From Adineta vaga (taxonomy: Eukaryota > Animalia > Rotifera), in NCBI GenBank assembly GCA_021613535.1, contig CP075493.1, forward strand, positions 2,604,001-2,668,000: 64,000 nt of DNA, in the 5' to 3' direction. Positions 18,551 to 24,368 of this stretch are shown here, one piece after another. The translations under genes were made by a program, and so were the position numbers. The notes below the pieces were generated by a model. It saw only the letters and a program-made list of their open reading frames with translations, was not told the origin of the DNA and ran no database searches. How positions within the stretch are numbered: position 1 is the first letter of the stretch; the number at the start of each line of letters is the position of its first letter.

Positions 18551-19414
18551 ATGAACGACGAATCAATCGATGATTGTATCTTATTATCACAAGATCCTAC
18601 ATTAATACCAAGGTATGAAGAATTTCTTCGATAAGTTTATCTTAAAAAACTAATGTTGAGAAAGAAAACATGCATTTAAATAACACTTTTTTTCTCTTTC
18701 TCGACGTTGTTGTAAAGAAATATATCAATGATAAATTCTATATCTTTTCTTTTTCTTCTTTGAAGAAGAAAATTTAACTTATCTCCCACGCCTACTTATA
18801 ATAGTCGAGCTATTTACGTGAAGGTAAAACTGGTATATTTTTATGATTTCTATCGTTTTATTTTCCTATGTCAATATAAGAGTAATGAAAAAAATGCAGC
18901 CAGAAAGATAAGAATACTAGTAGCGTTCTTTCTTTTTATGCTTAAAATTTCTCTTTTTCTTCAGATCAGTGGAAATGATGAAAGGAGATGATCCCGCATT
19001 TGTTGTTGATGAAATATCTAGTATAGTAAAATCAACAATTGAACGAGTCATTGGCGGCAAAACATATGAACATAATCAAGTAAATCGGTGGTCCGCTGAT
19101 ATTGTCGATCAAACATTAACGGAATTAACTAATTTAAAAAAACCATTTAAATATATTGTACATGCAGTAAGTCATTGTATTCAATTACGATGAATTATCT
19201 AGTAGAATTAATGTAGGTTTTAATGCAAAAGAATGGAGCTGGTATTCATACAGCTAGTTCTTGTTTTTGGGATAATACAACTGATGGTAGTTGTACTGTT
19301 CGGTAATGCGTTAGATCTTGTTTTCGAAATGATTTTATGTTTTTTTTCTATTCTAGTTGGGAAAACAAATATGTTTATGCTATTGTTTCAGTTTTTGGTT
19401 TATCTAATTACTAA
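18551..19414 (+). CDS. DYNLT1: Dynein light chain Tctex-type (DYNLT1/3-like); 4 exons
   Basis: AFVVDEISSIVKSTIERVIGG...LKKPFKYIVHA|VLMQKNGAGIHTASSCFWDNTTDGSCTVR|WENKYVYAIVSVFGLSNY*. First exon 18551-18612 is inferred from splice phase. Confidence 0.92.
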
Positions 19415-19613
19415 ACAAATATAATCGTCGCTCTCTGTTTTTTTTATCTATTCTTTTGCTTTTAGTCCATTGATATATTCTTTTTCTATAATAAAAAAAA
19501 AGAAGGAAACCTAATAAATAAATCTTGATAAAAATGTATTCATTCATGTCCTCTTTTTCTCTCGTGTCTGACCAAAACAATTTTTTTTTTCAATTTGTAG
19601 AAAGATTAAAAAT

Positions 19614-20957
19614 ATGTGTGGTCGTTTTGCTTGCGGTTTAGCTCCTGATGTTGTACGTCGTCTTTCGACTTATATGCATTCTCAAACACATGAAACAATT
19701 GTACCACCATTTATTGATTTAATGCCATCAACACGATCTTTTCGATCAAGTTGGAACATTTCTCCAACTTCAACTTGGTATGTTACATTGATTCGTTGAA
19801 AATATGAAAAATCAAAAAATCTTTTTCTCATTTAGTCTTTGTTTAATATCGGCCAAACATTTAGATGAAACAGAGGATTCATCAACAAGAGTTCTCTGTT
19901 CAATGCGTTGGTCACTTGTTCCACATTATTTTAAAGGTAATCTATCAGATTTTAAACCTGTTTTAAACAATTGTCGATCGGAAACTATCAATGAAAAACC
20001 AACATTTAAAAGACCTTTAAGTAATGGTTATCGTTGTGTCGTGCTTGCTGAAGGGTAATTTATAGAGTTGATTTTTAAAATTATGAAAAACATTTCCTGT
20101 TTTTTTCTAAATCTAGATTCTTCGAATGGAAGAAGAATGTATCAAAAGTACCTTATTTTATCTATCAATCCGAACCATTTCTTAAAGAAAAACATTATCC
20201 AAATATAAATGTGGATAAGATTCTTGAGAATACAAATGAAAAACTACCATTATTAGCGATGGCTGCTCTTTTTGATATTAATGAAAATTTCGATGTATGT
20301 ACCGATCAATGTTCGATATCTGAGCTGAACTTGAAATTATTTATTTAGACTGATCCATTGTATTCATGTGCAATATGTACAGTTGATGCAAGTGAATCTA
20401 TGCGAGATGTACATGTTCGAATGCCGGTAATAGAAAATAAAACAAACGATTGTAATTGTTAATTTTAATACATTATTTTCAAGGCAATTCTTTCAAGTCA
20501 ACAGGAGATCGATGAATGGTTGGATTTTGGTCGATATAAAACGGAAGAAGTAAGATTTATATATTTGAATCTAGAAAACAATTTTGAGAATAATTATCAG
20601 ATTCTTCCATTACTTGTTCCTCATGATGATATACAAATGTATCGAGTAACATCCAATGTTGGTTCAACAAAAGTAAATGATATGAATAATATTCGACCGA
20701 TGAATATCGATAAAGAAAAGTAAGACAATGATTTTCTTATTTCACTAAATGAGTTATTGAATTCTAGTAAAACAATATCATCAAATCAAAACACCCTTGA
20801 TTCATTTGTAATTAAAAAAGCACCGAAGAAATATTTCGAAGATCGTGTATTAAAAGATGAAACCAACAAAAATCTATCTCGTAAACGTACACAAAATGCA
20901 ATTGATGATTATATGTTTAAAGAATCGAAATCATCATCGAAGCGTTTGAAAAAATAG
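19614..20957 (+). CDS. HMCES: HMCES / SRAP-domain abasic-site processing protein; 7 exons
   Basis: N-terminal MCGRF (Cys2), WNISPT, MRWSLVP, NNCRSE, RCVVLAEG|FFEW, VHVRMP|AIL, YRVTSNVG. Confidence 0.93.
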
Positions 20958-21558
20958 ATCTTTCTCTTTTTTGTTTTATTTAATATTTTAGATATTTTTT
21001 ATTTCATTGTATAGTAATCCTGTCAGATGAAACTTGATAATTATTTAATCTCGATGAAAAAGAAAAGTCACTTTTTTTATGATGTATTTTTCTTTTATGT
21101 AACCGCAAAACGTTATCTTAATTGTCACTATTTTACTTACTTTTATTACATAAATACATTCTCGATTGTATGAAATCGTCGAAAAGATTATGTGGGTAAA
21201 GATTCTTTTTACATCGTTATCGCTCTTCTATTGATTGAAATCACAAAAGGCTGAGACAAACGAAAGAATATTTTTCTCAATTGTAATGAATACGACGAGA
21301 TGAAACATAAGGTGTTTACTCAGTTGTTTTGAAAACTAACTGCACCAACTTGAATGTACGACTTTGATCAACCAAGGATGATAAAAATAAATCGATTTAC
21401 ATATTATTTACAGAAGAATCACTGTTTCATACAATGTGTTTTTCATTTCTTTTCTCTATTGACTTCAGTGATGTGTATTAGACGACAAGATCATGTTGAG
21501 TTTTATTCAATAAAAAAAGAATTCTTTTACACTATTTTAAAACATATAAGTCAATTTC

Positions 21559-23633
21559 TCAAAATCGATGGTCTCTCGATTTTTGTGATAATTCATTTGA
21601 TATCATCGTACTTGTTTGAAGTTGATTATTATCTATTAATAATGGTTGTTCTAACATTGATGCACGCATATTATTAGCTGAATCTTGTTGTGATTGTAGA
21701 CAACCAATTAGATAACATATGAGACCCGCAAGAAACATCATAATAAACAGGATTGCAATACCGAACAAAACTATTGCCCAAATCGGTAAGAAACCGTGAA
21801 AGACTTTATCTTCATCACGATAATTCGTATTCACTTCACGTTGAACCATTTTCACTAATTGACATGTATTCAATTGATAATGAAATAATTGTTTAGATGA
21901 GTCATTGTATAAAGTTTCGTAATCAGAAAAGAATCGACCTAAAGAACAAATCTCATTTATTTGTGTAAAGAGCAAATTTTAATCATACATTGAACTTCTT
22001 TAATGAATTGCATTGTACATATCGTTGAATAAATATCTCCAAGAAGTTGAGCAGTTGCATATCCAGATGTTAAACGATGAATAATATCATTCTCCAATTC
22101 ATGAAAGACCCATTCGTTTCCATTTTGTTCGATTAATTTATTTAATTGATTTCTGTCAATATCACTTGTACAATTTGTTGGATCGATCATGACGTGAACA
22201 AGTGCATCAAAATGTGGTTGAACACGTAGTTGATGAAGAAGATAGAGATGAATTTGTAATTTTGTTGAATTCAATAGAGGATAACTAATATATCGTAATG
22301 ATTGATATGGTTCAATTTCTGATGAATTCAATTGATTAATAGTTAGAAATGGATGAATGATGTTGATTGTGATATTTTCTAAATTATCTTCCGTATCATT
22401 TTGATGTAATTTCGCTGAAAATGATGTTAAATTGCCATTTATTAAATTGTTCAATGATAATGGATGAGATTCTATTGTCCAAGCATGATTTTCCTCCGAT
22501 AATAAAAATGATTCTTCAGTTGAATTGTTCACTTTTGCCAAGAAAACTAACTGAAAATCGACTAAATCCTTAAACATTGGCATATAAAATATTAAAACAT
22601 GATCCGAATTAGTTGAAGACAATAAAAGGAATTGATGATTAGAAAAATGCTCATTCATTGATAGTAATGGTAATTCCGATGGATTAGGATCGATAATGAA
22701 CGCATTATGAAATGCTCGATGTCGTTGATGAAATCCATTTTTCCATTGATTCTGTAATTCATAATTGAGTTCTTTCAATTGTTCAAAAGATAGATCTAAT
22801 TGCCGTTCATTGGGTTGATAAGTTGTTCCTGTTGGATAATCAATTTGAGGTGTTTGTGTCATTTCAATATGAGTACCAAGAATAGCTGTAACATACAAAT
22901 TATTAAATTCGATAAATTCTACTAGACGTGATATAGATTGAACATAAGCTGTAAAATTAGAGATGTATAAACGTCCTGGATAGAATGAATCGCCAGTGAA
23001 TAGTAAACCAGTCGAACAATCATAAAAAGCAAGCGATGACATTTCGTGACCAGGAATAGGAATGACGACCAAACGACGTTGATAATCCAATGCATACGTT
23101 CCAATCGAACGTGGCCAGTTTTCTAAATGAAAAAAACGGCTAATTGCAGCGACACTCGCACGAATAAGAGTAGTAAAATTTTTCGACTGAAATTGTACAT
23201 CACCAGCTGTATGGTCACGATGATTATGTGAATGTATAACAACTAATATCATATCTTGACGTTGTCTACCCTGTTTCCTACACCATTTTAGAATTATTTT
23301 TTCAACATACTGTTGAATTGGAAACGAAACAGATGAGACTGTTGCTCCAGTATCAATTAATAATACTGTTCTACTACTAAAGAGTAGATATAGAAATGGT
23401 GCTTCATAATTAATACATTTATTCTCTCGAAGAACAAATGTATCAGCATTTATTGAAAATTCATCTATATAACGTCGGCGAGCATCTTCCTTAAAACAAT
23501 TCTTCGATCCATGAGTCCAACTCGTTCGCAGTTTTATTGACTGACTAAGATAACTTTCTTTCGGACAATAAAGTTGTACGGTGATACTAACAGCGCTTAT
23601 CAGTAAGAAGAAGAACAGCAGCAGCAGCAGCAT
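21559..23633 (-). CDS. Bacterial-type metallo-beta-lactamase-fold hydrolase with signal peptide, second domain, TM helix and cytosolic tail (~674 aa); exons 21989-23633 and 21559-21938
   Basis: Motifs LLIDTGA, HSHNHRDHTAGD, IPGHE, LFTGDSFYPGRLY and GTHIEM. A 50-nt GTATGA...TTTAG intron (21939-21988, phase 1) puts ORF 21957..23633 in frame with ORF 21559..21975. Confidence 0.85.
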
Positions 23634-24368
23634 ACTATTCTATCGTTGATTGTAAATGAAAATGAATGACAAGATTGTTGATTATCATGTGCATTTATTC
23701 TCATCACATATATAAACAAGGATATATTTCTTTTCTATTTCGAAACTTTAAGAATATGTTGTGTGATTATTTAAATATATTCTATGCATCTTTTCATAGT
23801 TATGTATGATGAATATCTTGGTTTTGCATAAATAAAAAATGAAGAAGAACAATATGAAGTTTGTTCTTCGTTTTCTTCGTCTTATTTGTCTTCAAATTTA
23901 TAAATAATTGCTTTTCTCATCAATGTTATTCGTTTCCGTTCAAAAGAAGAAGGACAATAAACGTGTTTAATTCTAACCATAGTTGACAAACGCTCTCGAA
24001 GGAAATATCACAATTTGAGCCTATATAAAAAATGAGCTGTTCTCGTTTTTCTGTGATTTTATTCGATGTATGATAGTGTTACTGAGAATTAAATTCAATG
24101 CTTGTGAGTGAAAATGATGAGTAGTTATTAGTTAAACAGAATTTTAGATATTTGTTTTTTTGTTCCACTTAAGAGTGAAGTAAACATTGAGTTTTTAAAA
24201 AGGACAAACCTCTCTTAAACAATATTGTTAATAGAAGCTCCTCTAAAAAGAAAACTTAAATTTATTTGACTGTTGTTCAATAAATAATATCCTGAAAAAC
24301 TATTGAAGAATAAAACTATCATCTTTCATATGATCAATATAGCCTATATTTCGTCATTTTTTAGAGAA

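Follow-up and report, generated by a model that had tools for sequence, protein, structure and literature searches.

A Bacterial-Type Metallo-β-Lactamase-Fold Hydrolase Fused to a Double β-Barrel and Probably Anchored by a Host-Like Exon in the Bdelloid Rotifer Adineta vaga

The metallo-β-lactamase (MBL) fold is found in glyoxalase II, N-acyl-homoserine lactone (AHL) lactonases, and class B β-lactamases, and a ligand pattern of HxHxDH, H, D, and H is that of glyoxalase II and the lactonases. Genes acquired by bdelloid rotifers are said to have gained introns and host targeting signals, as reportedly described by Gladyshev et al. 2008, Flot et al. 2013, and Nowell et al. 2018. Horizontal gene transfer (HGT) into bdelloids is itself well established (PMC6264785). 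The C-terminal domain (CTD) of PcncAAAD, a noncanonical aromatic amino-acid decarboxylase of Psilocybe cubensis, is a non-catalytic double β-barrel that packs on its enzyme and is needed for activity (PMC13062060). Here we describe a gene on chromosome 1 of the bdelloid Adineta vaga, I4U23_000744 at NCBI, which lies on the minus strand at positions 21559-23633 of a 64,000-nucleotide stretch (the window; positions 2604001-2668000 of the chromosome-scale contig C1, in an assembly of 100.8 Mb and six contigs). It probably encodes a bacterial-type MBL hydrolase fused to a double β-barrel related in fold to the PcncAAAD CTD and later anchored in the membrane by a host-like exon (Table 1).

Among the matches listed, the named sequences that cover the product nearly in full are all from bdelloids (Adineta, Rotaria, and Didymodactylos). 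The next matches are bacterial and comprise ~300-aa proteins with signal or lipoprotein leaders, at 43-49% identity, as well as tandem MBL-MBL proteins and propeller fusions. The exported hydrolases of Winogradskyella, Maribacter, Mucilaginibacter, Oligoflexus, Bryobacteraceae, and Planctomycetota resemble the rotifer domain over its whole length (43-48% identity over ~285 aa) and are exported as the rotifer protein is predicted to be, but they are single-domain proteins, tandem MBL-MBL proteins, or fusions to a β-propeller, and the barrel, if any, is a separate neighboring gene. The tandem relatives (~600 aa) and the β-propeller fusions (PF21959/PF16819) include P0057, P0044, and P0072 of Acidobacteriota, and P0059, P0108, and P0112. 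Relatives were found at no fewer than 583 bacterial loci, with one genome scanned per species, in Bacteroidota, Planctomycetota, Acidobacteriota, Bdellovibrionota, Pseudomonadota, and other groups. The bacterial and bdelloid sequences align with 49 invariant columns, including W..GS.NC, NKC.NYE, H.H.H.DH, PGH, TGD..YPGRLY, H.IE, and DYP.G..YQP, and all of the metal-ligand motifs fall on invariant columns (alignment A3). No named non-bdelloid eukaryote was present among the matches listed, NCBI and UniRef entries included.

Our phylogenetic analysis of 78 bacterial and 37 bdelloid MBL domains placed the 37 bdelloid rows in one clade (support 100, stem 0.66) that adjoins Acidobacteriota (87) and then Bdellovibrionota, with Didymodactylos basal within it. 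These results support HGT of an MBL subfamily that is otherwise bacterial and that entered bdelloids once, before the sampled genera diverged. Bacterial-type coding, ameliorated composition, a spliceosomal intron, spread across genera, and ohnologous copies are all features that this gene has in common with other acquired bdelloid genes. Unlike them, it matches two neighboring bacterial genes, here fused, and one of its ohnologues is anchored through a host-related 3′ exon. Full-text literature searches returned no description of this MBL family in bdelloids.

The MBL domain was matched by Pfam PF00753 at 33.7 bits (cut-off 22.7) over aa 82-227, and the curated models of glyoxalase II, AiiA, and the class B enzymes all stayed far below theirs. 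The hydroxyacylglutathione hydrolase model TIGR03413 (GloB) gave a partial match of 33.8 bits against 200.8, the AiiA AHL lactonase model NF045699 gave 19.3 bits against 375, and the class B β-lactamase models of NCBIfam gave 24.7 against 100 (core), 18 against 200 (B1), and ~12 against >600 (B3 families). The initial annotation, made from the sequence alone, had proposed a horizontally acquired bacterial MBL enzyme of lactonase- or β-lactamase-like character. Its assignment to a bacterial subfamily is borne out by the best non-bdelloid matches, all bacterial, and by scores far below the cut-offs for the metazoan, glyoxalase II, lactonase, and β-lactamase models. As to the enzyme class, the MBL fold stands, and the AiiA and class B cut-offs were not reached. 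The suggested lactonase or β-lactamase activity, and an action on ingested metabolites, are speculative. The 548-aa ectodomain was predicted by AlphaFold2 (AF2) as one compact unit of two packed domains (predicted local distance difference test score, pLDDT, 93.3; predicted template-modeling score, pTM, 0.90). A Foldseek search with the MBL half returned 500 matches at E ≤ 0.001, of which the listed top ones are MBL enzymes, the B1 enzymes first. The likeness to solved MBL enzymes is at the level of the fold only (template-modeling score, TM-score, ~0.68 normalized by target, 15% identity), and a sequence search of the PDB with exon 1 gave no match. The rotifer domain has Asp where the B1 enzymes have a Cys ligand. 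It is ~80 residues longer than the glyoxalase II, AHL lactonase, and class B enzymes and carries N-terminal extensions that contain Cys.

It is hardly credible that the gene is not foreign at all, that is, that it is an assembly contaminant or belongs to one of the old MBL families of animals (LACTB2, MBLAC, or glyoxalase II, for example). The generic MBL fold and the weak partial match to glyoxalase II (33.8 bits) would fit an old animal enzyme, but the distance from the GloB, AiiA, and class B cut-offs and the bacterial origin of all top non-bdelloid relatives argue against one. As for contamination, the contig is of chromosome scale and the genes on either side are intron-rich animal genes, the synteny of the locus is conserved in several bdelloids, the gene contains a spliceosomal intron, and its GC content (31%) is not distinct from that of its surroundings (28-32% across the window).

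The second half of the ectodomain, referred to here as the C-domain, had no Pfam match at E ≤ 1, and none was significant for its stand-alone relatives or its bacterial partners. Folded alone, it was predicted with confidence (AF2, pLDDT 90.8), and its sole strong match among solved structures is the PcncAAAD CTD (6EBN residues 719-956; Z 16.7, root-mean-square deviation (rmsd) 2.9, 193 aa; next-best Z 6.7). A search of the ESM Atlas agreed (TM-score 0.73, PF21391 cluster), whereas protein-atlas searches by feature gave nothing of use. Foldseek matches to PCNA and other sliding clamps were rejected (TM-score below 0.2, rmsd above 15). The barrel of P. cubensis (6EBN residues 718-1013; PF21391) and that of the rotifer share a fold, and both are C-terminal to and packed against an enzyme, the former being non-catalytic and the latter predicted to be. 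The partner is a pyridoxal phosphate-dependent decarboxylase in PcncAAAD and an MBL hydrolase in the rotifer, and the two barrels have no detectable sequence relationship; a profile of the C-domain family (A2) matched no PDB chain at E ≤ 10. Acidic sites that bind calcium, placed between its barrels and where it meets the enzyme, are a mark of the PcncAAAD CTD. The rotifer barrel differs from that domain in being predicted to be extracellular, with Cys pairs and N-glycosylation sequons.

A profile search of 1.8 billion representative sequences found 514 relatives of the C-domain, mostly of 250-310 aa; none of the distant ones belongs to a named cluster, and two were traced to clearly bacterial contigs. 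On one bacterial contig (L099), a barrel gene is followed after a gap of 12 nt by a gene for a 313-aa MBL protein with 43% identity to the rotifer domain (E 3e-80). When the bacterial MBL loci were rescanned, the same co-oriented adjacency with the barrel upstream was found at three more loci (L044, L026, and L048), and in Oligoflexus (L043) the MBL gene is upstream of the barrel gene, as in the rotifer fusion. Among 101 Bdellovibrionota genomes, the barrel is present in 13, the MBL subfamily in five of those, and the two are adjacent in three (G001, which is the genome of L043, G096, and G005). This brings the total to seven adjacent MBL-barrel pairs in bacteria, in both gene orders, the barrel being a separate secreted protein or lipoprotein gene. 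Because the C-domain family is encoded beside the MBL subfamily in bacteria, the fusion mirrors a bacterial gene pair, and the rotifer gene appears to join two families that were already linked. The initial annotation had regarded the gene as an acquired enzyme fused by its exons to a host anchor. The acquisition and the host-like anchor hold, while the second domain is not the unexplained addition that this picture implied. Apart from the barrel gene, the bacterial MBL neighborhoods are unrelated between loci (methyltransferase, Rce1-like, DUF3237, fucosidase, and dehydratase genes) and give no hint of a substrate.

The C-domain also aligns with a stand-alone secreted family of ~295 aa, found on A. 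vaga chromosome 2 (I4U23_007612, locus L003), in other bdelloids, in dictyostelids, in Paramoeba, and in protist transcriptomes; the A. vaga member shares 45-53% identity with those of dictyostelids, Paramoeba, and protists. The closest non-bdelloid relatives of this A. vaga gene (L003:1096-2073) are from protists, and it may be a separate eukaryote-to-bdelloid acquisition. Two further bdelloid-type paralogues were noted: P0339 (562 aa, on a 1.8-Mb ENA contig), a putative pseudo-enzyme whose MBL domain has lost the HxHxDH ligands and which retains the barrel and a hydrophobic C-terminal tail, and P0345 (316 aa), which is a barrel only, with a tail like that of P0339.

The hydrolase and the barrel are encoded by an unbroken exon 1. 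The gene as a whole appears as two minus-strand open reading frames (ORFs), one at 21957-23633 (558 aa) and the other at 21559-21975 (138 aa), and the proposal that these are one spliced gene holds. The last base of exon 1, at 21989, is the T of a divided TGT codon, and exon 2 starts at 21938, giving an in-frame KEVQ-C-RFFSDY, and the junction of the NCBI model (P0001) is identical. A downstream ORF homologous to exon 2 was found at all six orthologous loci (A. steineri L006 and the metagenome or assembly contigs L007-L011). Wherever the junction could be placed (L006-L010 and A. vaga), the intron is at the identical Cys codon, in phase 1, with GT and AG ends and a length of 44-52 nt, although its sequence has diverged among the orthologues and contains in-frame stops. 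On these grounds the comparative support for the intron is strong. Pairwise ratios of nonsynonymous to synonymous substitution (dN/dS) are 0.18-0.27 for the MBL domain, 0.27-0.35 for the C-domain, and ~0.46 for exon 2, which points to purifying selection. Retention of the intron had been suggested to yield a secreted form; the reading frame does end in ICSLHK and a stop, and a secreted retention isoform is hypothetical.

The architecture first proposed, with a signal peptide, an MBL domain with all of its metal ligands, a second domain of ~230 aa, a transmembrane helix, and a tail, agrees with hydropathy, AF2 prediction, and alignment. Exon 1 opens with a hydrophobic window (aa 1-19, Kyte-Doolittle 2.83) and contains 10 N-glycosylation sequons and seven Cys residues, and exon 2 has a single strong hydrophobic stretch (Kyte-Doolittle maximum 2.99). 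A type I single-pass topology, with a predicted signal peptide and one predicted transmembrane helix, is thus supported by hydropathy heuristics.

The membrane anchor seems to be a derived character. Most bdelloid copies are ~572 aa long and end in EIQC-T-x-GP-x-F-x-x-C-N-V, including the copy on A. vaga chromosome 4 (P0034, L002) and the basal copy of Didymodactylos, and the stand-alone and bacterial barrel proteins share this ending. The chromosome 4 copy, which is predicted to be secreted, ends in C-x-x-GP-x-F-x-x-x-C and has no exon-2-like sequence at its locus. Since an SRAP paralogue lies downstream of it, the locus is collinear with that of chromosome 1 and the two copies are ohnologues; since this ohnologue is secreted, the transmembrane exon would be the derived state. 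Sequences of the transmembrane type form their own clade (97) in the MBL tree. No remnant of the ancestral C-x-x-GPDF...C ending was recognizable by eye inside the intron. The Rotaria copies examined are without exon 2, and their ancestral ending is extended by a short hydrophobic tail. In L096 and L097 (Silwood2 and Silwood1; P0040, P0038, and P0037), GPDFYDNC is kept and is followed by a short Ser-rich segment and a tail resembling a glycosylphosphatidylinositol (GPI)-attachment signal, which would be a second, independent route of membrane attachment.

Genome-wide, exon 2 matched only two genes, one on chromosome 4 (L013) and one on chromosome 1 (L014), both encoding small type I membrane proteins and sharing with it the frame F-F-H-x-G-F-x-P-x-W ... 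Y-L-x-G-C-R-R-P. Against L013, the single sequence gave an E-value of 2.7e-5, which improved to 5e-11 when a profile of seven orthologues was used. We regard this as good evidence that the stalk-plus-transmembrane module of exon 2 and that of L013 and L014 share a common origin. Just after the helix, the orthologues have CR[RK] and A. vaga has CLQSQQ. The two small genes (L013:1327-1887 and L014:1237-1827) belong to no Pfam family and have a tail with a canonical acidic dileucine, DDEFLL; a weaker match to their family lies at G000:C1:2821708-2821920. The stalk, helix, and tail are in none of the bacterial MBL homologues. With the short, secreted endings of the ohnologue and the basal bdelloid copies and the host membrane-protein matches of exon 2, this agrees with the initial annotation that the anchor was added on the host side.

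The tail comprises 46 aa and contains EQPLLI, which had been read as an endolysosomal sorting signal. Targeting of the enzyme to lysosomes through a canonical adaptor protein (AP) motif, [DE]xxxL[LI], is unlikely in our judgment. EQPLLI fits the pattern in A. vaga, no part of the tail is better conserved among the seven orthologues than the region of this motif, and the related L013 and L014 carry a canonical motif. On the other hand, the canonical register is present in only one of the seven orthologues, A. vaga itself, the final position being T, N, V, V, K, or Q in the other six, and the conserved Glu precedes the first Leu by three positions rather than four. In addition, matches to [DE]xxxL[LI] occur in 9% of shuffled tails, so that EQPLLI alone is not above chance. 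What is conserved is a core of E-x-x-L-[LI], in which E96 and L99 are invariant and position 100 is L or I, together with a C-terminal D-x-x-F whose D and F are invariant in all seven. These two elements make a conserved cytosolic interaction motif likely, and the tail is likely to have some cytosolic sorting or binding function rather than lysosomal targeting specifically.

Several points weigh against the reading of the gene as an acquired hydrolase-barrel fusion that was later membrane-anchored. The first concerns the joining of the two domains, for which adjacency in bacteria is recurrent and not general (five of ~81 MBL loci and three of the 13 barrel-bearing Bdellovibrionota genomes). 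In the C-domain tree, moreover, the sister group of the fused domains (99) is the eukaryotic stand-alone family and not the sampled bacterial partners, so that co-transfer of an MBL-barrel pair is not demonstrated. It is possible, although we lean against it, that only the MBL gene came from bacteria, that the barrel was recruited in the rotifer from the eukaryotic stand-alone family represented by I4U23_007612 and its amoebozoan and protist relatives, and that the likeness to the bacterial pairs reflects convergent coupling. Such an independent assembly would agree with a tree in which the fused domains and the stand-alone family make one clade (99, branch 0.8) with the sampled bacterial partners outside, and with BLAST scores of the fused domain that are higher against the stand-alone eukaryotic proteins (107-126 bits) than against the bacterial partners (87-94 bits). 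The fused clade, however, is the sister of the stand-alone clade as a whole rather than grouping within it beside the bdelloid stand-alone genes, and the motifs KG[ND]FEQGG and C-T-x-GP-[DE]-F-Y-x-x-C are common to the fused and bacterial barrels, where the stand-alone family has NGSFDT. The chance fusion of exactly those families that are neighbors in bacteria would also be a striking coincidence, and the tree is unrooted, with thin bacterial sampling. Members of a clade sister to the eukaryotic stand-alone family come from short contexts, of which L101 looks eukaryotic, with a 740-nt non-coding flank of lower GC.

The remaining points concern the A. vaga copy and the evidence for its families. 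This copy is on a long terminal branch (0.33-0.40, vs. ~0.1 for its orthologues) and some conserved C-domain positions are altered in it (e.g., PDFD to PHFD), and so it may be under relaxed constraint. Its expression looks very low: contigs from Logan are 150-210 nt long, with a depth of 2-8, and cover pieces of both exons and of the 5′ end, in runs whose RNA status was guessed, and no contig among these short, low-depth ones crosses the intron at 21939-21988. The absence of the MBL subfamily from non-bdelloid animals is read from ranked hit lists and not from an exhaustive genome search, and neither the MBL subfamily nor the barrel family has a biochemically characterized member. A further alternative is that the A. 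vaga gene has fallen silent or is in decay, or that intron retention makes its product in effect a secreted one, and that the transmembrane form is relevant only in other species. The sparse coverage, the missing junction contig, the long branch with its altered residues, and the lack of a spliced full-length transmembrane-type metatranscriptome protein among the matches listed would all agree with it, but we hold it to be quite improbable, for both ORFs are intact with all metal ligands kept, the splice sites are intact and canonical, and each of the three parts has a dN/dS well below 1.

Taken as an acquired fusion that was later anchored, the gene would encode a type I membrane glycoprotein in which a luminal or extracellular binuclear metallo-hydrolase is packed on a non-catalytic double β-barrel. 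An exported bacterial hydrolase would have been acquired first and then fused with the family that neighbors its subfamily in bacteria. After genome duplication, the ending of the chromosome 1 copy would have given way to a short intron in phase 1, followed by an exon that encodes the stalk, helix, and tail. By analogy with the PcncAAAD CTD, the barrel may be an accessory or stabilizing subunit of the hydrolase. A small ester, lactone, thioester, or phosphoester outside the cytosol is a candidate substrate, at the cell surface or in endocytic or digestive compartments, and ExxL[LI] and the terminal DxxF may bind the cytosolic sorting machinery. A broader picture, which we hold only tentatively and consider rather doubtful, is that the exported MBL protein and the double β-barrel are an unrecognized bacterial two-component system that bdelloids captured, fused, and diversified into secreted, transmembrane, possibly GPI-linked, and pseudo-enzyme forms, the transmembrane form having arisen by shuffling of an exon from a host endocytic protein to give a recycling cell-surface or endolysosomal enzyme acting on microbial compounds.

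The gene model used here differs from that of NCBI. The top database match of the locus is "hypothetical protein I4U23_000744 [Adineta vaga]" (P0001, 633 aa), which begins at MSIKL and so is without the signal peptide (window 23548-23633) and which excises 11 residues (YVEKIILKWCR) as a 33-nt in-frame "intron." Because all homologues keep both segments and the 11 residues fall in a confident AF2 helix (aa 106-120, pLDDT 96-98), exon 1 with both included is the better model. Read in frame, this exon aligns collinearly with its bacterial and bdelloid homologues, and no internal intron is supported. At the ATG, a contig from a run of guessed RNA status follows the genome collinearly (23573-23762).

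Table 1. Features of the I4U23_000744 locus, in window positions, with the basis of each assignment.
Feature	Position	Strand	Basis
Whole coding region (I4U23_000744), two exons	21559..23633	-	ORFs and database match
Exon 1, 548 codons and first base of the split Cys codon	21989..23633	-	ORF
Predicted signal peptide, about aa 1-22	23568..23633	-	Aligns with signal peptides of bdelloid paralogues
MBL-fold hydrolase domain, aa 25-325	22659..23561	-	Pfam PF00753, bacterial identity, AF2
33-nt in-frame segment, "intron" in NCBI model, probably coding	23277..23310	-	Homologues and AF2 helix
HNHRDH (HxHxDH) metal motif, aa 136	23211..23228	-	Invariant alignment columns
PGH ligand motif, aa 194	23046-23054	-	Invariant alignment columns
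TGD ligand motif, aa 213	22989-22997	-	Invariant alignment columns
GTH ligand motif, aa 253	22869-22877	-	Invariant alignment columns
C-domain, aa 319-548, double β-barrel accessory domain	21990..22679	-	AF2 and structural match
GT-AG intron, 50 nt, phase 1, inside Cys codon after KEVQ	21939..21988	-	Orthologue comparison and public annotation
Exon 2: stalk with conserved HY...C and N-glycosylation sequon, transmembrane helix, cytoplasmic tail, stop	21559..21938	-	Orthologue alignment
Transmembrane segment with juxtamembrane GFxPxW...GC frame	21703..21789	-	Hydropathy; likeness to L013/L014 transmembrane module
EQPLLI; conserved core E-x-x-L-[LI]	21634..21651	-	Seven-orthologue alignment
C-terminal D-x-x-F-COOH, D and F invariant 7/7	21562..21573	-	Seven-orthologue alignment
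Neighboring multi-exon Tctex-1-like and SRAP-like genes	18940..20972	+	Conserved synteny

The SRAP-like and Tctex-1-like genes downstream have many exons of 80-230 nt and introns of ~45-60 nt, in contrast to the 1.6-kb unbroken exon 1, and SRAP, Tctex-1, or both are also downstream at the orthologous loci L006 and L008-L010. A contig at window 21175-21371, likewise from a run of guessed RNA status, fills the interval where the 3′ ends of the SRAP-like and MBL genes converge and may be the 3′ untranslated region of either. An expression entry for FUN_000744 (PMC10809525; flagged as HGT, zero counts) was discarded, because its neighbors (opsin, arginase, and acyl carrier protein) are unlike the SRAP and Tctex-1 genes of the window and the gene numbering must therefore be a different one.

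Foreign genes are abundant in bdelloids, and few cases are known of how they become working animal genes. The locus described here displays three separable steps, namely acquisition, fusion, and conversion from a secreted to a membrane-anchored form. It appears to be a clear but not unprecedented case of an animal rebuilding a foreign gene, and the fresh point is the bacterial MBL-barrel pairing. The fusion together with the bacterial adjacency predicts that the MBL protein and the barrel would work together. The locus also offers an entry point to two uncharacterized families, a widespread bacterial MBL subfamily and a Pfam-less barrel family whose only solved relative is enzyme-activating.

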